NCBI GenBank assembly: GCA_038496445.1
Contig: JALMLS010000420.1
Location: forward strand, 124,001 to 188,000
Reading direction: 5' to 3'
DNA from: Trichosphaerium sp. ATCC 40318
Taxonomy: Eukaryota; Protista; Tubulinea
Length of the DNA: 64,000 nucleotides
This document shows positions 10,223 to 41,141 of this stretch, piece by piece. Numbering within the stretch: position 1 is the first letter of the stretch; each line of letters opens with the position of its first letter. The notes under the pieces were generated by a model. It made no database searches and was not told the DNA's origin. It saw nothing but the letters and a program-made list of their open reading frames with translations. Made by a program: the position numbers and the translations under genes.

Positions 10223-13370
<3,148 letters not shown>

Positions 13371-13481
13371 TATTATAGTATAATTAGTACTAGCGCGTGA
13401 ATTCAACAAAAACAAGGACGAAATAGTTTTTTATCCATGTTTCGAAAAAAAATAATAATTGAGAGCACAAACATAGGTAGA

Positions 13482-15458
13482 CTAGCGCGCACGTGCCTTA
13501 TTTAACGAATTATGGAGTTGATTTACAAAATTCGCCGACGAATACCGCTGTCCGGGCATCATCGACATATTTTGCTGCTGAGCATTGTTATATTCATCAA
13601 ATTGGCTCAAGATGGAATTTCTATGATTATCTGGAACCATACTGGATAAAAACTTGAGGACGTCCATGAAATCTGCTCTTGTGTAAAACGCGGTGTTGCA
13701 TAGTATATTTTTAGAGTACCTGGTACGTATGTGAAGTATTTGGATTGAGGAGAAGGGAAAATAACGTTATTGTAAATTAAAAACACTTGGACCGTGCGAG
13801 GCGGGAAACAAGGAGGCGTGGTGCATATCAAAACCTAAAGTCCCATGTGGTCAACCCACAGACCAAACCATAACAAACAAATGTGATCTATAAATTCTAC
13901 CCTTGTCACGTACCTTGTGTTCTTCGTCTTCTCTAACATAAGGAGCTCTCTGCTCTCCAAACAAAACACAAGCGCTGAATATCGCATCATTACAAATGGA
14001 ACCAAAATAACATTTTTTTGAAGCTTTTTTTTTGCAAAACGCCGTTTTTCTTTTTGTATAATTTGAAACAATATAAATTATTTCGCACGTGACAACACAC
14101 CAAAAACTACTGTCCAAAAAAACAAAAATTCTAAAATAAAAACAAATTACGCGTACCCCGGTCGCCAATTGCGTAAGAACACATCAACTGTTTGTCCACC
14201 TCTACAACTACCGCTTGAAGGATTCATACGGCTTATATGTGGTATTTGGCCTTGTTCTTCAAGGCTAGTTCCATTTTCCTTATAGCTCCCTTCTGTATCC
14301 ACACGTCTTCGTTTAGCCATACGTGAGTTATCATGCACGAGAAAGTTGTTAGAAACAACAGTAACAAAGTCCGTATCTAAAAAAAATTATTATTAGAGAA
14401 CTTCTCAAAAAACTCGTTTTAGAATTAGCTCATGACTTCTTTTTTTTCGTTTGTCCATTGGTACGTACAAGCGCTAACTCTTGCCGCTAGATATAATGCA
14501 AATGAGTTCATATTAACACGACTACACTGTTCCATCACTCTCAAGAAAATGACTAGTTCATTTGTGGCATGTGCAACATCACAAGTACAATACCGTCTTC
14601 GTGCTCTAAAAACAGATAAGTTTGTAAATTTACGTATGAGGAGTGTTGTGACATTTTCTTTCATCATATTTTTTGTACTGTACCTGCAACTGTGTATGCT
14701 CTTTCCGCGTTTACAATGTTGACATGTAGATTCATGGGTTTCCAAGACATTCTCTAAAACAGGAAATTAAGAAACGGGTTATGGTAAACCTAAATTAGGC
14801 AGGAATTACCAGACTTGTTAGAGTGAACTACAAGGCTTGTTTGTTGATATGAGTGAGGGTTTGTTTGGCCTGGGTAATAATTATTTTAATTAATTCGTGG
14901 TTTTTTTGCCTCAAAGGCTTACCTTCAACCAAATGCATTGTCAGTTCGATTGGATTAGGACACTCTGCTACAACCACGCTATAGCGAACGCCGTTGCTTT
15001 CACTACAAAGCTCAGGATCGCCCAATTTATACAAAATGCGCGTACTTGTTCTTTAAAAAGTCTGTAAACTTTGCTGAGCGTAAATGTAACTCGCTACCAT
15101 CTATTCCGTACAATTTGACTGTAATATTCAAGTAACCTCTCCAACGTAATATACTATGAGGCTGTGTAACGATTCTAAGGTAGTTTTAGAGATTTTTGAC
15201 GTCAAGTGTAATTCGTAAAATGTACTCCTTTCATTAAAAGCGACACATGTTTAACTTTTTTATTACCTTATTTCCCTCAAAATATCTTCCTCTTGTTTTA
15301 CTGGCGTTGGTGCTACCTCTACAGCTGTTTAGTAAAAAAAAATTTTGCAATAAAGTCCAGCATTGCGTACCTGAAAACAATACTGGGTCAGGATAGCAAC
15401 CATCCCCATCCCATGGGTCAGGGCTTATCTTTGGGAATAATGGCTGTGGTTCGGTCAT
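13482..15458 (-). CDS. COE/EBF (Collier/Olf/EBF)-like transcription factor: DNA-binding domain with zinc knuckle, plus an IPT/TIG domain
   Basis: Spliced translation gives IVTQPHSILRWRGYLNITVKLYGIDG..FTDF, ESNGVRY, VLETHESTCQHC, LVIFLRVMEQC and VSNNFLVHDNSRMAKRRR, then IPT (PHISRMNPSSGSCRGGQTV..VLFG..CTTPP..VQVFL..YFTY). This is colinear with EBF1 motifs recalled from memory. Confidence 0.75.
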
Positions 15459-15825
15459 GTTTGACGTTTCAAAGTTGTATAGCACTCCCTATTCAATGTG
15501 CATAAGCTTGGCCAACTGGGATATGGCTAGGGCACAAATATGTTTTTTTTTAAGCCCTATTGACCTCAATGTTGACCCTTACTAAAAACGAAATAGACTG
15601 CAAAAACGCCTACTCATTGCATTAAACCCTTGTACATCACTTCGTGTCAATGAAATTTCATTTGTTGTGTAGGCTGAATAAAACTATTCATACGATGTTT
15701 GAGTATAACTACGCCTAACTAGCTAGCAGTTCTAGCGAACGGCGACTTACGTTAGGGTTTAAGTTTTTTTGAAAATCCCTTTTTTTGCTTGTCTTCTTTA
15801 TTGTTGCATGCAACCTTGTTGAACA

Positions 15826-18800
15826 ATGTCAAAGCGTAGGGACCCGCCTTCTGGTGCTCAAGAGCGGGATAGCAAGCGCGCAAAGATTGAAGTTCCCCAG
15901 TCTGCGTTTCAAGATGTATGTTGTTGTTAAAATTACTATTTCTTACAAATATAGGCTGAAGAGTTTAATATTGCTGTGTTAAAGCAACAAAATCAACAAC
16001 TTTTCTGCAAATTAAAGCAGCAACAAACTGAGATCAAAGAACTAAAGGTTGAGCGCAATGCAAGCAAACAAGCCAGTGAAAAAGCGGCTGTTTGCGCAAA
16101 CGGTGTAGAATTAGCGTTTCAGGAGGTTAGTGTTAATATACTTGTTATTGTAACAATTAACGGCTTATAGCTAATTGAAATTCTTAAATCCGTTCCAAAA
16201 CTTGCTACAGTAGAACAAGTGGTAGATATAGACTCTTCACTATTAACAAAGGATTTTCTCGGCGTAGTAAAGGACTCTGGCGCTTCCTCTGCACTTTCGT
16301 TGGAATTCACTCACAGAAATGGCCAAATACGAGAAGCGCTCACGCAACTCTCTTCGCTGCTAGCACAGACCGTCCAAAAGCAAATTAATTATCACAAAGC
16401 TCTAAGCACCTTATCAGGTAATTAAACTAGCATTAAAGTAATCTTCCTAGTCTGTGCAACGCTTTTAAATACTCACAGGGCAATTTAACTGATTACGAAG
16501 TAGGTGACGATCAAAAACTTGCGCAGCTCACTGAACGCCACGCAGAACTAACAAGAGATCTTAAGGATACTAAACAGGCTCTCGCCATTGCTGAGAATAA
16601 TGCGCGAGTGCAGCAGCGTAAAATGGATGCGTTGCAGCTGCAAGTGACAGGTAATTTCTTTGAAGAGAACTTTTTTGTTTGACCGAGCTGTCAAGAAAAA
16701 TGACCTCCTCCTGGCGTTTAACGGAATAATAACGATATTGTAGACTATGAAGCCGCTAAGAAAGAAACTGTTGAAGAGACTTTCAAGCTTAGAGAAAGGC
16801 TTGAACGTTTCGAACGGGATTCACACAGGCTAGAACAAAAAGTGAGCACAATGACAGTTAAATTGGAATCCGCACAACTCAGTTCTTCTTTTGACACGGA
16901 CCATGATATGGGACAAACAGAACAACCTTTACTCGATAAGGTATGAGCCTAATTCCAAATGGTATCTTTAATAGTGGCTTATGAGTATAGGACGTCCAAG
17001 CGACTATAGAAGAACTTAGAAGAAAGTTGGCATCTCGCCTTCAAGAAATCAAACAGCTTCAGGACGAAAAAGTTGGCTTACTCAAAGCAGCCAATGCACA
17101 CAACCTGGTAAGGTCCTTTGTTAGCTTGTTTGAATGCATTTCTGTTATGCAATATGTTTATTGACACCCTCAGGGCCAAGGAACACATTCAGGGCATAGT
17201 ACTACAGAGTACAAGGCTCTAGAAGCAAAATATCTTCACATCAAAGCAGATCTTGATAAGTCAACACAAACAGCTGCTTCTCTGCAAGAAACTCTTCTCG
17301 ATGCCAATGCCAGTCATGCCAAGCAACTGAAGGATTTAGAGGTATATTTATCGCCGTGAGCGCTTTGTATTAAACATACTTGCATTTAGGCAACACGGAT
17401 AAATCACGTGAACAATCTTCAAAATAAAATCAACGAACTTCACAGCAAGATGGCAACTGCTATGCTTAACGAAAATAAGAACAAGCATGGATCAGAGCAA
17501 TTAAAAGGTGTCAAGAGCTCCCAAGAGCTAATGAAGGAACTCAAGCAAATGGCTGAGTCATCAGAGCTCCGATTGAAAAAAACTCAAGAAGAAAATGCAA
17601 AACTGAAGAAACAAGTTGAAGAGTCAAAAGCTCTCTTGGATAAGAAGTCCGAAGAAGCACTCAATAAAACTTTGGAAGAAAAGGTAATAATAATTGGCGT
17701 TATCTTAATCATAGCAATGTTGTTAACAGTCATACGCTAGGAGCTGGCTGTGAAGATGGCTAATGAAGAAATTAAAAAATTAAAATCAGTCATCGATCAA
17801 CACAGCAAGCAACAGCAAAAGTGGACTGACAAGGAGCATGAATTAAAACTAATGATAAAGGGATATCAAAAATTACCTTCTGAGCAACTGGATGCAGCGA
17901 AGGTAAGTCACGTGGCGGAAGCCTACGTCACTCTTGGCGTTTTCTTTAATGAAACTTCAAAAAGTCGATTTTTATGTTTCATGCTCATTCCTTTTTTTAG
18001 CTTCAGGTTGCTGCTAATATTGCAACAAGTAAGCAAGAGAAAGCTGAAGCAGAATTGGAGAAATTCAAATCTGGAGAGGCCTTAGAGCGTGTTAAGAAGG
18101 AAGTTGCTGATAAGATGAAACGACTTGAATCACAAAACAAGGATCTTTCTAAACATATATTTAAAGTAAAAGAAGAAAAGACCAAGATTTTAGAAGACCT
18201 TTCTTCTCAAAAAGAAGAAGTAAAAGCTCTTTACAGTGAGATTGAAACAATCAGTCTAGAATACGAAAAGAACCTTGAACAAAACGCCAGGTTGTTGACA
18301 CACATGCAAGACAAGGATGAGTCCAATACCACCATGTATAAAGAGGTATGTTTAAGGGATATTGAGTCCAGCACTGTAACTGTAAAAGGCATGGAGCTAA
18401 TGTTGTTCTAGACGCTCAAGATGACTCAAATACAAAATAATCTAAGGAAAGAAAATGACTTACTCAAAAAAGAGGCTGAAGCAGCTAGTAATGCTCTTAC
18501 TCAAGTGAAGACCCAGATGGATTTACTTCGAGAGAAAGTAGCTATTGTAGAAAAAAAGAACGTAAGCTAAACATCATCCTGTATTCAACCTGATAAAGCT
18601 CACTTTCTTCCTCTTAGCAACAACTCATGACTGAGCGAACTCTTACAAAAGACCAAAAGAAGGCATTAGAAGAGAGCGCACAGCACTCTGATGCATTGAG
18701 TATGTCTTTGTTTTTGGAATGTTTAGTAGTGTTGACACGTGCTCATAAATAAAAATAGGTAACGAGGTCAAGACGAAACTAGTTCTCGTTCAGAACTCTT

Positions 18801-21554: not shown

Positions 21555-24174
21555 ATGAGCGATCGTGACCGAAAGAGAGGTCGTAGCATCAGTCGTTCAC
21601 CTTCTAGGGAACGTCCACGAAAAAGAGAGCGAAGGCACAATGACAGAGACGATTCGCGTCAGGCTAGGTACCTGCGCTATTTGCTTAGTAAAATTGAACT
21701 AATTTTTTTGTTTTTAGTCGGGACGGACCATACCTACAACGTGGGCCAAAGGAGGCAGAAAAGAAGGAGGAAACAAAAGCAGAGCAAAAGAGAAAGACTG
21801 CTATGTTAGAAAAATTAAGCAGCGCTGCAACAGGAAGAGCGGGCGGTGTATACATCCCTCCATTCAAACTCAGGCTTATTGAGAAACAAATAAAGGTACA
21901 GGGCATTTTAGCGGTTAAACAAATACAGAAACTGTTTTAAACAATCAAAAGCGCATCAAAAGCATAAATAACAGCCGTGAGAGTGAAAATAACACTAAAT
22001 AACTTTAAGTGAGAAAATGCACCTATTGACACGTTTCTGCAGGATAAAACAGGCGAAGCCTATCAACGGTTAACCTGGGATGCTCTAAGGAAGAGTATAA
22101 ACGGATTAGTAAACAAAGTGTCAGCAACGAACATAAAAAACATTATACCGGAGCTCTTTGCAGAGAATATCATCAGAGGCAAGGGTTTATTATGCCAATC
22201 ACTCATGACGTCCCAACTCGCTTCACCAATGTTCACACACGTCTACGCCGCTCTAATCGCCGTAATCAACACAAAAATGCCAGAAATTGGCGAGCTCATA
22301 CTTCACAGACTTAGACGCACTTTTGTAAAGGTACGCCTTCGTTCAGCTCACCCTCTTTGTCCTAAACGTGAAGATATCAAACCACGCTATTTATTTGCAT
22401 CAATCAAGCGCAAAAAACAAGCGTGTCAGTGTCACAATGCAAAATTTCAAAAAATGAAAAAAAAAAATCGATTACGTTTTTTGATTTTTTCTACAAAACG
22501 CGCTGTGGCTGTCAAATAATTATTGCCTTGCTATTTTCCGCGTGTACATAGACAAGTGCTTACTATGGTGTGTTTTAGGCGTTCACAAGAAATGATAAAA
22601 AGCGTCTTTTGTCTTCAATTCGATTCATAGGCCATCTTGCGAATCAATACGTTTGTGGTATTATCCTACCGCTTCAAATTATAACCAAGCTTATTCAACG
22701 ACCTACGGACGATTCTATAGAAGTTGCTGTTAATTTTGTTCGAGAATGTGGTGAGAGGCTTCAAGAGGAGTCACCTACTGCGTTTAACGGTATTTTCAAA
22801 CAATTCCGAGCTATCCTGCAAGAAGGGAGTCTAGACAAGAGAACACAGTATACTATTGAAAATTTGTTTGCTGTTCTTAAAACAAAGTTTACCGATCATA
22901 AAGCTATCATTGAAGAGCTTGATCTTGTTGAGAAGGATGATCAGTTTACTCATAATATTGATTTGGAGGAAGAGTATGATGTTGAGGATAGATTGAATTA
23001 TTTCCATTTCGACCCTGATTATGAAGAAAATGATAAAACATACGATAATATTAGAAAGGAAATTCTCGGTGATTCTGACGATGATGATTCTGATTCTTCT
23101 TCTGAATCTTCTTCTGATGAAGATGAAGTACGTAAAGGCACTGTTGATATTCGTGATAAGACAGATATGGCCCGTCAGAACCTCAAGAGAACAATCTATT
23201 TGACTATCATGTCGAGTCTCAACTTTGAAGAGTGCGCACACAAATTGATGAGGATGAAACTCGATGACGAGCAGAAGCAAGAAGTCTGTCAAATGTTAGC
23301 AGAGTGTTGTGCACAGGAGCGTTCATATACTAAATTTTATGGACTCCTGGGTCAACGTCTTTGTATGATCGACATGATGTTTCAAAGGTATTTGGGCGAA
23401 ATCTTCGCCTTACAGTACCAGGCTATACACGCTCTTGAGACAAATAAGCTAAGGAATGTTGCTAAGATGTTTGCACATCTTCTACAGACTGATGCTTTGA
23501 ATTGGGAGGTGTTTAAGTGTATTCATTTGACTATGGATGATACAACGAGTAGCAGTCGTATTTTTGTCAAGGTATTGTTCCAACACTTGGCAGAGTTCCT
23601 TGGGCTTCCTAAGCTCAAAGCTCGACTTGAAGAGAATGTTATGCAACCTTTCTACACTGGATTGTACGTCTACAATTTTTAGGGTTTATTTTAAACGGAA
23701 GAAACGCTCGTTTTCTCTCTTTCTTTTTTTTTGTATCTACGCGAAAACAATTCGTCTACGCGTAGATATTGATGTTTATGTTTACTGCGCGAGTAGCGGG
23801 ATTTTATTTTTTTTTGTTTGCGTTTGCTGGTCGCTTATTTCGTTTTTCTTAGGTTCCCTCGTGATAACCCTCACCATACTCGATTTGCTATTAATTTCTT
23901 TACATCCATTGGTCTCGGCGCGCTGACGTACGTTCTTTTTTTGTTTTCTGCTGTTCCAGAACATGTTACTAATTGATTCCTTTCTTTCAGGGATAAATTG
24001 CGTGAGCATCTGCAGAACGCTAAATATGACGAGGAAGAATCTTCTTCATCCTCCTCATCCTCGTCGTCTTCTTCAGATTCGTCGTCCTCCTCTTCGTCGT
24101 CTTCTGACTCGTCCTCAATCAGTTCTTCCGATACTGACTCATCTTCGGACTCTGATTCGTCTTCATCAGACTAA
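21555..24174 (+). CDS. CWC22: Pre-mRNA splicing factor CWC22 (MIF4G + MA3)
   Basis: [62 protein letters not shown] and [13 protein letters not shown], with a Ser-rich tail. Confidence 0.97.
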
Positions 24175-26475: not shown

Positions 26476-27436
26476 ATGGCCAATTTATTCCGTACAATCG
26501 CTCGCTTTGCTAGAACTGCGTACAGAAAGTGTACTTTACAAGGTACGGGTTGGGCGACGATTATGTCGGCAAAGCCATTGGGAAGTAGTGAGAGGTGTCG
26601 TGTGTTAAAAGCGCGACGAAATGATAATGGAGAGAGTGTAGCTCTCAAAATTATTGAAACGGCTAATAGAAGCACAGATGAGTACGAGGAGGACGCTGAG
26701 GCACTTGTAAGCACTTTTCCCTTTCTTAGTTTTGTTATTTTTGCACCAACCGGCACAAATACTTACTCGACTTCTCTAGGAGCGCGAATACGACTTCGCT
26801 AGCAGTCTCAAGTGTAAAGGCGTCGTCAAACCCTTGAAGTTTCTAAGTGGTAACCATGGAGTTGCGATAGCAATGCCCAGAGCTTATGGATCCGTGTTGG
26901 ATGTGTTTGCAAATCCTTCGGTCAACACTGTGGCGGTTGTAGCTGAGAGTACGTTATCTACACTCACGCAACTGCACAGAGAAGGTGTAGTGCATAACAA
27001 CATCACGCCGGATAACATATTGGTGTTCCCTTCAATGGACATAATGCTCGCTGATTTTGGCGCTTCTGGGTATGTAAAGGATACCAGAAAGCTCAAAACC
27101 TTTATGGGCACTCCTGGTTACGTGTTACCTTCTGTTGAGCGCAGAGGGTACACAACACAGAATGACCTTTACGCAGTTGGTGTGACAACAATGCGTATTG
27201 CATTAGGCGACGAATACATGCCGTGCAATGAGTACTCTGGTGAAAGTGAGTTTGAGGCTAATCGCCTCTGTTTTCAAAAGTTGAAGGAAGTATTCCTGAA
27301 ACGCTTTGAGAGCTCACTTAACCACAATGAGTGCTTGCTGGTCGATTTTGTTCACGCTTGCCTTGAACCATCAGCCGAGTATCAGAGCGCGTCAGATTTG
27401 ATGGAACATGAATTCATCTCTTTAGCGTATGACTGA
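26476..27436 (+). CDS. Protein kinase-like, probable pseudokinase (one intron 26707-26779)
   Basis: VALKII, DFG and GTPGY are present, but the catalytic loop reads VHNNITPDN (HRD to HNN) and the Gly-loop is degenerate. Confidence 0.8.
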
Positions 27437-35121: not shown

Positions 35122-37203
<2,082 letters not shown>

Positions 37204-39298: not shown

Positions 39299-41141
39299 TT
39301 ACTTGATGCGCAATTCGAATCGGGAAAAGAAGATAAAGGCGACAAGGATAACAACCCAAGCGGTAATTACCATCAATGGCTCCCTGAATACGTCCATGCT
39401 TCCGTAGTTGTAAGTAACTTGGAAGTATTTGAGGTTGTGTTGGTTCACAATGTTAGATGCGCTCAAAACAACGACAGGACGACCTTGGCTATCGAGGTAG
39501 CTCTTTTTGATATCAGAGGATTGTGATACACCAGCGAAAGGCACGTGCAATTTGATGTTACTAAAAGAAAGATCAGTCATGACAAAAACTTTCGAAAAAA
39601 ATACAAAAAAAAAATTATCCAGTAGGCTAAAAACAATAACGTACGTGGCGCCTTCAGGAAGGACTACTCTAACAACAGCTTCATCGACAACAACGTTTTG
39701 TACCCAATGAGGACCAAAGGTCATGTTCAACATGTAGAATGAAGAGTCAGAGGCATCTCTGAACAAGCTGTTTTCGAGAGGAATGCTGTATCCCAACAAC
39801 CATTCGGTTTTCCAACCACCAAAGAGAGGGAATCGAGGTTCGAACTCCAATTGAAGTTTTTTGGCGCCCTTAACGTCTTTTGGACCCATATGGGATGTGG
39901 AGATGTTACCAATAGCATCTCTAAATAAAAGTTTTAGAATCAAATCGTGAGCCATCAAAGCATACCTGTAGTAAACATTGGCGGCATTAGGTGCAAGGTA
40001 TTGAGTCATTGACTTGATAGCAGCTTGGCCGTTAGCTTGAGGGTTGATCTGGTACTCGTAACGAGAGAATGATCCACGAAGAGCAGCGCCATCGTGTCTA
40101 ATCTTGTAGGACTCTTCGAAGGCAATGTTACCCCAGTGAGAAACCTTTTAAACTTGTTAACAAATGGTTTTTGCGGATGTTGATTTTTTTTTTAGCGCGT
40201 TTGTCAAACGTACCTCGACTTCTCTTTCAACACTTTTTACAGTGACGAATGGAGAGTTGTTTTCGTAGTGTACAACCATGTGGGATTCAGCGTAAGATGG
40301 AACGTCATTGTATGGACCGTATTTGATTGAATCTCCCTTAACAGTTGTAGGTGGATGATCAGAGTTTGATTGGACAGAGGATGATGCCAATTTGACCTTT
40401 TTTAAAGTAAGTCAAACGTATTTAAAGTTTTTTTTTTGTAGGATGTCCGTACAGTTGTCGTTTGCTCAGTTGTTTTATATGGAGACGCAAAGAAGTGGTT
40501 TCCCTTGTATCTAAACGCAATTAAGTGATTTTGTGCGCGTTTTGATTATTTCTTTTACAAAAACATGGTCTGTGGCGCGTACCTGACCAATTGACGTTCT
40601 GATTGGGTGATAGAGTTTGGATATGGTTCAATTTGATGAGTAAAGATCATACCGACCTTGATTGTCATTGAATCGCTTGTTTTAAGGCTCTTACCGAGGG
40701 CAACCTCATAGAATACCATAAACCTTGAAATGTTAGTGAAGACACGTAACGTGGCAGTAATAGAAAGTATTTTTTGCGCTTACCTGTTTGTTCCTTTTCT
40801 CTTGGCCTTATCTGGGCTCTTTTTGGTGGCTAATTTCGCTCCTACGTCAGTGTTAGCATTTTGCCAAATGTTTTTCGTTTGCGCAAACGCAACAAAAAAG
40901 TACCAGTAGCCTTGTCTGTTACGGACAGGTAGGATAGATTGGCCTCATCGCTTTCATCAAGACACAACAAATACTTATTAGTGGCTTCGCCTTCGTTGGT
41001 GATGGCTACTTCCACTGTGTGTTTAACAAGTTGGGTTTTAAGATCAAGCTTCCTTGTCACTTTGGTGTTAACGAGACCTTCAGAGGCTACTGCCACTACC
41101 AATAGGCAACACAGAGATAATATATGCGTGAAACGAGTCAT
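39299..41141 (-). CDS. RPN1: Oligosaccharyltransferase subunit ribophorin I (OST1)
   Basis: Signal peptide; YGPY..VHYENNSPF, EVSHWGNIA.EE, FSRYEY, PRFPLFGGWKT, VVLPEGA and SYLDSQGRPVV; C-terminal TM segment. Confidence 0.95.

Follow-up and report, generated by a model that had tools for sequence, protein, structure and literature searches.

A gene on the minus strand of a 64,000-nucleotide stretch of the Trichosphaerium sp. ATCC 40318 genome (hereafter the window; positions 124,001 to 188,000 of contig JALMLS010000420.1, assembly GCA_038496445.1) encodes a protein of 1117 residues, the N-terminal 340 of which are, judged by their sequence, a distant, genuine homologue of the DNA-binding domain (DBD) of COE/EBF transcription factors, a Rel-like β-sandwich with a His-Cys3 zinc knuckle, together with the IPT domain behind it. 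COE/EBF factors are textbook regulators of animal development, and Trichosphaerium is a marine amoeba. The protein continues beyond the IPT domain into ankyrin repeats, a PBD/CRIB segment and a PAK-type kinase. What is new here is an expressed, highly diverged COE-type DBD-IPT unit in an amoebozoan, set within a previously unreported DBD-IPT-ankyrin-PBD-PAK architecture, for which no match was found in the databases and literature searched. An earlier note on this DNA, made from the letters alone, had described a stand-alone COE-like factor in an apparently non-animal genome; the likeness and the host have stood, while the supposed stand-alone factor is the front half of a kinase fusion.

The domains of the protein, in order from the N-terminus and in window coordinates, are as follows.

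14303..15280, minus strand: COE-type DNA-binding domain, residues 43-230, exons 2-8 (Pfam PF16422, E 2.6e-6)
14686..14736, minus strand: zinc-knuckle equivalent within that domain, His143, Cys147, Cys150 and Cys159 (H-x3-C-x2-C-x8-C), from the alignment with 20 animal COEs
13727..14242, minus strand: IPT/TIG domain, residues 251-335, exons 8-10 (Pfam TIG, E 2.4e-6)
13292..13672, minus strand: helical region at the position of the COE helix-loop-helix (HLH), residues 338-422, exons 11-12 (four helices in an AlphaFold2 (AF2) model)
12751..13144, minus strand: ankyrin repeats, residues 424-510, exons 13-14 (Pfam Ank_2, E 1.3e-16; Ank, E 1e-9; PDB ankyrin matches)
11947..12750, minus strand: basic, low-complexity linker rich in Ser, Thr and Pro, residues 511-734 (from the protein sequence and its spliced mapping)
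11733..11946, minus strand: PBD/CRIB, residues 735-789 (Pfam PBD, E 4.5e-12)
10376..11553, minus strand: protein kinase domain of the PAK/STE20 type, residues 833-1082 (Pfam Pkinase, E 1.5e-66)

The similarity of the N-terminal part to COE proteins was found by several kinds of sequence comparison. When residues 1-260 were searched against Pfam, COE1_DBD was the sole family reported at E up to 10, with E 2.6e-6 and 27.6 bits against a cut-off of 27, and the match spanned profile positions 33-229 of 231. A phmmer search of residues 1-420 against all PDB sequences returned five matches, all of them COE1 or COE3, the best being 3mlp_A (E 3.6e-8) in a collinear alignment of residues 48-328 with residues 31-307 of the EBF1 chain; EBF1 and EBF3 IPT chains were likewise the top PDB sequence matches of the IPT region. 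In a single BLASTP comparison, amphioxus COE aligned over 332 residues at 25% identity (E 4e-16). A hidden Markov model (HMM) built from 20 animal COEs only gave the protein 72.2 bits, whereas the best of 5000 composition-preserving shuffles reached 9.5; the scores were 35.8 bits for a DBD-only model (shuffle maximum 11.4) and 20.2 bits for an IPT-only model (shuffle maximum 7.6). The search that gathered the COE sequences was seeded with residues 1-420 of the protein plus a 55-residue EBF1 fragment; the EBF1 row inflates its E-values, which do not count as evidence here.

Fifty-two columns are invariant in the alignment with the 20 animal COEs, and these include the QP.S.LR motif (the equivalent of Arg63), NG.(x)Y, VL.THE, all four zinc ligands, the VH.NS loop (the equivalent of His235) and core residues of the IPT domain. 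Pfam searches with single exons, and a PDB phmmer search with the read-through of exons 5-6, found no match: seven exons share the domain between them, and each piece is too short to score.

Structural comparison points the same way. The AF2 model (predicted local distance difference test score, pLDDT, 60) was built on the COE alignment and is hence not independent of it. When it was searched with Foldseek, the 12 top matches were all EBF1 or EBF3 (E down to 6.5e-17), with NFAT and NF-kB next in rank; VIA superposed it on the EBF1 DBD with Z 14.3 and a root-mean-square deviation of 2.9 over 156 residues, and on the EBF1 IPT domain with Z 12.7 and a deviation of 1.9 over 88 residues. The modelled match only corroborates the sequence statistics.

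Since the Rel-like fold is shared by several families, the N-terminal domain could belong to another of them (Rel/NFAT, CSL, SPT23/MGA2, CAMTA CG-1, DG1062_N or STAT/CudA), with the COE match reflecting nothing but the common fold. The layout lends itself to this idea, as DBD-IPT-ankyrin is the order of SPT23/MGA2, CAMTA and NF-kB p105 and not of COE, and the structural neighbours found in the Atlas include SPT23_MGA2_DBD, DG1062_N, LAG1 and RHD clusters. In both Atlas searches, however, the COE clusters ranked above these; a fungal SPT23_MGA2_DBD cluster was the third neighbour, and SPT23_MGA2_DBD+TIG and CAMTA clusters were among the rest. The zinc ligands, which are specific to COE, are invariant, and the PDB search yielded COE chains only, though its library holds Rel, NFAT and CSL structures. 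Pfam gave COE1_DBD alone for residues 1-260, and none of the families that the earlier note had named as competitors (DG1062_N was absent from, or unreported by, the Pfam copy used, and the presence of the SPT23_MGA2_DBD model in that copy is unconfirmed). We therefore consider membership of another family improbable.

The locus is one expressed gene of 26 exons belonging to the amoebozoan Trichosphaerium sp. Its complete coding sequence, mapped spliced onto the window from the 1117-residue protein P0032 of the Marine Microbial Eukaryote Transcriptome Sequencing Project (MMETSP), runs on the minus strand from 15458 to 10223 and comprises 3354 nt, that is, 1117 codons and a stop at 10225..10223, with zero mismatches across all 26 exons. 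P0032 is a member of the 90% cluster of P0001 (926 residues, 100% identical), which came up in an exhaustive HMMER search that used exon 7 as its query. Intron lengths range from 43 to 182 nt (mean 75 nt); of the 25 introns, 24 are GT-AG and one is GC-AG. Spliced transcript contigs, aligned with 13300-15800 and at least 99% identical to the window, come from four runs belonging to three studies, and 11 junctions of the upstream part of the gene (13369 to 15371) are visible in them. Two elements of this region alter the reading of the protein.

14869..14810, minus strand: exon 5, 60 nt, residues 117-136 (two joints in a contig of run X1, also in P0032)
13496..13370, minus strand: GC-AG intron 11, 127 nt (joint 13369/13497 in runs X1, X2, X3 and X5)

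The peptide strings quoted in the earlier note do lie on the minus strand, in the order given there and flanked by GT-AG introns, and nine of its splice junctions are confirmed by the transcript contigs. Its gene model nevertheless needed repair. Exon 5 had been passed over inside a supposed intron of 169 nt, and its inclusion restores EBF-like spacing ahead of the zinc knuckle; exon 2 starts at 15318 rather than 15324; and the string 'EQISMDVLKF' mixed two frames, the junction between the IPT domain and the helices reading ..YVP|DFMDVLKF.. in both the transcript contigs and P0032. A further correction concerns the 3′ end. The stop codon at 13482-13484, which had been taken to end a product of about 380 residues, falls inside the GC-AG intron 11 and is removed by splicing in all four runs, so the reading frame does not end at 13482 but continues through 15 further exons to 10223.

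A fusion of this kind could in principle be an artefact in which short-read assembly merged two neighbouring genes, one for a DBD-IPT-ankyrin factor that stops at the TAA 12577-12575 and one for a PAK that starts from an ATG near 12430. Retention of intron 14 (67 nt, 12577..12511) would indeed bring that TAA at once, with the ATG lying 145 nt further on, and contigs in this compact genome can span genes. Against this, two independent MMETSP contigs, P0001 and P0032, both lack 12577..12511 and connect the halves in frame through the exon 14/15 junction (12578|12510), which lies in the linker; intron 14 has the canonical ends GTAAGA...AATAG; and the linker of 220 residues is an open reading frame throughout. 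On this evidence a merger of two genes seems highly improbable.

The MMETSP0405 transcriptome (taxid 498012), source of P0001 and P0032, is that of the host, Trichosphaerium sp. ATCC 40318, Amoebozoa. In the published draft genome the GC content is 37.69% and introns average 75.4 bp (PMC10521059); the GC content of the window is 36-42%, and the mean intron of the gene, 75 nt, equals the genome mean. MMETSP data are known to contain contaminants, and the gene might be one, or might have come recently from an animal by transfer. But it lies within a 64-kb window of uniform GC, carries 25 short introns of the length typical of the genome, and is matched by contigs at least 99% identical in runs from three studies. 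A recent transfer is further opposed by an identity of about 25% to every animal COE, when animal COEs share 62-85%, and by introns none of which (0/11) shares position and phase with fish ebf2. Together with the housekeeping neighbours described below, the source label, GC content and intron size make a contaminant or an animal origin very unlikely, to the point that we give it hardly any weight. The earlier inference of a non-animal genome was thus correct.

The resemblance to animal COE proteins is remote, as the earlier note had also recognized. Measured against the 20 animal COEs, the identity of the protein is 23-26%; in the aligned region those COEs themselves match amphioxus COE at 62-85%, and similarity above 80% has been reported among the DBDs of the family (PMC4312928). 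The zinc knuckle of EBF1, residues 157-170, has the form H-x3-C-x2-C-x5-C (PMC4312928). In the Trichosphaerium protein all four putative ligands (His143, Cys147, Cys150 and Cys159) align with those of COE and are invariant, with a last spacer of x8. The knuckle residues around His149 are rich in Lys and Arg and very basic, and a KRRR motif occupies the DBD/IPT junction, the position of the nuclear localisation signal proposed for EBF. Behind the IPT domain, the supposed loss of the second HLH helix had rested on the false stop; helices are predicted there, yet no COE HLH similarity is detectable in them.

Intron positions have little to say about these relationships. Over the aligned region, none of 11 introns shares both position and phase with those of the fish (Scomber) ebf2 gene; the one that comes closest lies a single residue away, at the boundary between the IPT domain and the helices, and is in phase 1 in both genes. 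We regard the comparison as uninformative, neither for nor against common descent.

We propose that the protein acts as a DNA-binding factor, latent or coupled to signalling, in which a COE-type DBD-IPT unit is combined with ankyrin repeats and a PAK module, and we put the probability of this explanation at about 0.55. The DBD-IPT module would bind nucleic acid, since it retains the zinc ligands, the equivalents of Arg63 and His235, the basic knuckle and the KRRR motif. In NF-kB p100/p105 and in SPT23/MGA2 the part of the protein behind the IPT domain keeps the factor latent, and by analogy the ankyrin repeats behind the Rel-fold DBD and IPT domain may confer intramolecular masking and latency, so that the protein is probably a signal-coupled latent factor of the NF-kB p105 kind. 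The PBD and kinase would form a built-in Rho-GTPase switch through which Rac/Cdc42-GTP controls the factor in cis, and autophosphorylation of the linker, the ankyrin repeats or the DBD region could alter localisation, processing or DNA binding. Alternatively, the DBD may serve to carry kinase activity to chromatin.

The kinase itself is apparently active and of the group I PAK type, as far as its residues can tell. The solved structures nearest to it in a PDB sequence search are human PAK2, PAK3 and PAK1 (E 2e-79), and the GxGxxG (as GEGAAG), VAIK, HRD, DFG and APE motifs are intact. The CRIB core of the PBD is degenerate.

Several observations weigh against our proposal. DNA binding by the DBD-IPT unit is a prediction, and EBF1 Arg163, a knuckle residue described as absolutely required for DNA binding (PMC2923972, PMC5411688), aligns with His149. 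The last knuckle spacer is three residues longer than the x5 of EBF1. No COE HLH was detected: PF16423 gave no match at E up to 10, and an HLH-only HMM scored -1.0 bits, rank 951 of 5001, which makes dimeric clamping in the manner of COE doubtful. That Arg163 and the HLH are both lost speaks for binding in another mode or with another specificity, or for no DNA binding. The full-length protein scores 25.8 bits for COE1_DBD, just below the curated cut-off of 27. The AF2 model is of moderate confidence and tied to the COE alignment, the single-sequence AF2 model having a pLDDT of 30. The fused mRNA is known only from short-read assemblies, and contigs in this genome can cross gene borders. Finally, no homologue was found in other protists by searches that reach close relatives only: an exhaustive phmmer search with exon 7 recovered only the protein itself and TIG-repeat proteins, and neither word-index searches with P0001:1-230 and P0032:1-420 nor pattern scans of metagenome and viral contigs returned relatives.

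Much of this also bears on the question of what the unit might bind. COE/EBF proteins bind the palindrome TCCCNNGGGA as dimers, and the binding specificity of the Trichosphaerium protein probably differs from it, because Arg163 is replaced by His and the HLH dimeriser is absent.

The same departures fit a second explanation, in which the protein is essentially a PAK kinase and its COE-like, IPT and ankyrin front is a protein-interaction or targeting module that does not bind DNA, with a role in cytoskeletal or GTPase signalling. IPT domains in plexins, and ankyrin repeats generally, are protein-interaction modules, and the N-terminal targeting domains of amoebozoan PAKs are varied. The protein is best conserved in its kinase and PBD, and the His in place of Arg163, the altered knuckle spacing and the lack of an HLH dimeriser would all fit a domain that has lost, or never had, DNA binding. 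On the other side, the zinc ligands, the arginine of QPxSxLR, the histidine of VH(D/N)NS and the basic knuckle have been kept through a divergence of about 75%, and KRRR sits at the place of the proposed nuclear localisation signal of EBF. The retention of these residues suggests selection on a DNA-contact apparatus, and we consider a pure targeting role, the main rival to our proposal, possible but doubtful.

How far back the COE-type unit reaches is a separate matter. Daburon et al. (2008) detected coe genes in metazoans only, and individual DBD exons gave no non-COE matches (PMC2394523); the animal-specific core families of Richter et al. (2018) include 'transcription factor COE 1-4' (PMC6040629). 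The view of COE as a metazoan innovation, which the earlier note had adopted, thus has support in the literature but is disputed, since Fortunato et al. (2016), citing Suga (2013), state that COE is present in Capsaspora too (PMC5064789). COE is not mentioned in the text of Suga (2013), and the Capsaspora claim is thus second-hand. Our literature search found no report of COE-type domains in Amoebozoa, and none in the Trichosphaerium genome paper (PMC10521059).

From the Trichosphaerium protein we infer that the COE-type DBD-IPT unit is either older than animals or a very ancient acquisition. The suggestion of a pre-metazoan COE lineage is therefore reasonable, but it is drawn from a single organism with no relatives found, and an ancient transfer is possible as well; with one carrier and no homologues found, conservation of the fusion and vertical descent are both conjectural. 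A more far-reaching and tentative scenario is that Amoebozoa and Obazoa inherited a COE-type DBD-IPT unit from their common ancestor, where it was part of a latent DBD-IPT-ankyrin factor that shared ancestry with fungal SPT23/MGA2 and paralleled NF-kB p105. The Trichosphaerium version, fused to a PAK, would then represent an undescribed pathway from small GTPase to DNA in one polypeptide.

A COE-type DBD-IPT unit in an amoebozoan means either that this DBD originated well before animals or that it was transferred in ancient times. In both cases the protein provides an outgroup with which ancestral features of the COE DBD can be sorted from animal additions. The zinc ligands and the equivalents of Arg63 and His235 look ancestral; the features that seem to have been added in animals are Arg163, the x5 spacer, the HLH and the extreme conservation. 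The fusion in turn suggests a short circuit from Rho-GTPase signalling to gene regulation. As the full-length Pfam score lies under the cut-off, automatic annotation would miss the protein, and this may explain the absence of such proteins from surveys.

A number of further observations concern the transcript and its surroundings. The donor sequence GTACG(C/T), an unusual consensus, occurs in 13 of the 25 introns of the gene. The mRNA begins with a short leader.

15459..15521, minus strand: 5′ untranslated region (UTR), about 63 nt (transcript contig end at about 15521, sequencing adapter adjoining)

This leader holds an upstream open reading frame of four codons (ATG CAC ATT GAA TAG, 15503..15489, minus strand). 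One X1 contig is unspliced over intron 2 (15148-15296), which could be intron retention or pre-mRNA, and differs from the window by G>C at 15179. The X2 transcript contig, at 4020 nt, is about 1.4 kb longer than the spliced coding sequence downstream of its start requires; the excess, which lies below 10223 on the minus strand, is either a long 3′ UTR or a continuation of the contig into the next gene. The linker that separates the ankyrin repeats from the PBD contains three repeats in tandem, each about 13 residues long (window about 12200-12400, minus strand), which may be phosphorylation sites or docking sites of the SH3/WW type.

Next to the gene lies a divergent one, and the exons further along are an ordinary eukaryotic housekeeping context; those recognized in the window include the following.

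15826-16170, plus strand: divergent gene beginning MSKRRDPPSG, followed by coiled-coil-like exons
22609-23682, plus strand: exons of a CWC22-type MA3 domain
26834-27436, plus strand: protein kinase exons
35771-36331, minus strand: exons of an ALG6/ALG8 glycosyltransferase
39299-40009, minus strand: ribophorin I exons

The divergent gene starts about 300 bp from the 5′ end of the COE-like gene, and the two probably share a bidirectional promoter region.

Compared with known systems, the protein combines features of several families. With animal COE/EBF (EBF1; PDB 3MLP, 3LYR) it shares a near full-length DBD followed directly by an IPT domain, the His-Cys3 ligands, the arginine of QPxSxLR, the histidine of the VHxNS loop and a basic motif between DBD and IPT. 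It differs from them in its identity of about 25% (animal COEs exceed 60% among themselves), the x8 knuckle spacer and the His in place of Arg163; it is without a detectable HLH and without a C-terminal transactivation tail of the COE type, has ankyrin repeats and a PAK kinase instead, and belongs to an amoebozoan host.

Fungal SPT23/MGA2 and plant and animal CAMTA likewise place an N-terminal domain of DNA-binding type before an IPT domain and ankyrin repeats. SPT23_MGA2_DBD (PF25603) was not among the Pfam matches at E up to 10, the presence of that model in the Pfam copy being unconfirmed; no C-terminal hydrophobic membrane anchor of the SPT23/MGA2 type is visible in the P0032 sequence; and Pfam gave no match to the CG-1 or IQ domains of CAMTA.

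As for group I PAKs (PAK1-3) and amoebozoan PAKs, the likeness is that of a PBD/CRIB upstream of a STE20/PAK kinase with all catalytic motifs, and the differences are a degenerate CRIB core and an N-terminal extension of 730 residues with a DBD of transcription-factor type, an IPT domain and ankyrin repeats.

A parallel in overall design is offered by NF-kB p100/p105, in which a Rel-fold DBD, an IPT-type Ig domain and ankyrin repeats follow one another in the same order, and Rel-family structures were the next best matches after EBF. In contrast to NF-kB, the Trichosphaerium protein has no RHD Pfam match (PF00554/PF16179), bears a COE zinc knuckle in its DBD and is without a death domain or a glycine-rich processing region, and its kinase is fused in cis. 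The likeness to NF-kB p100/p105 is an analogy of layout only, with a COE-type domain in the place of the Rel homology region and a PAK in the same polypeptide.

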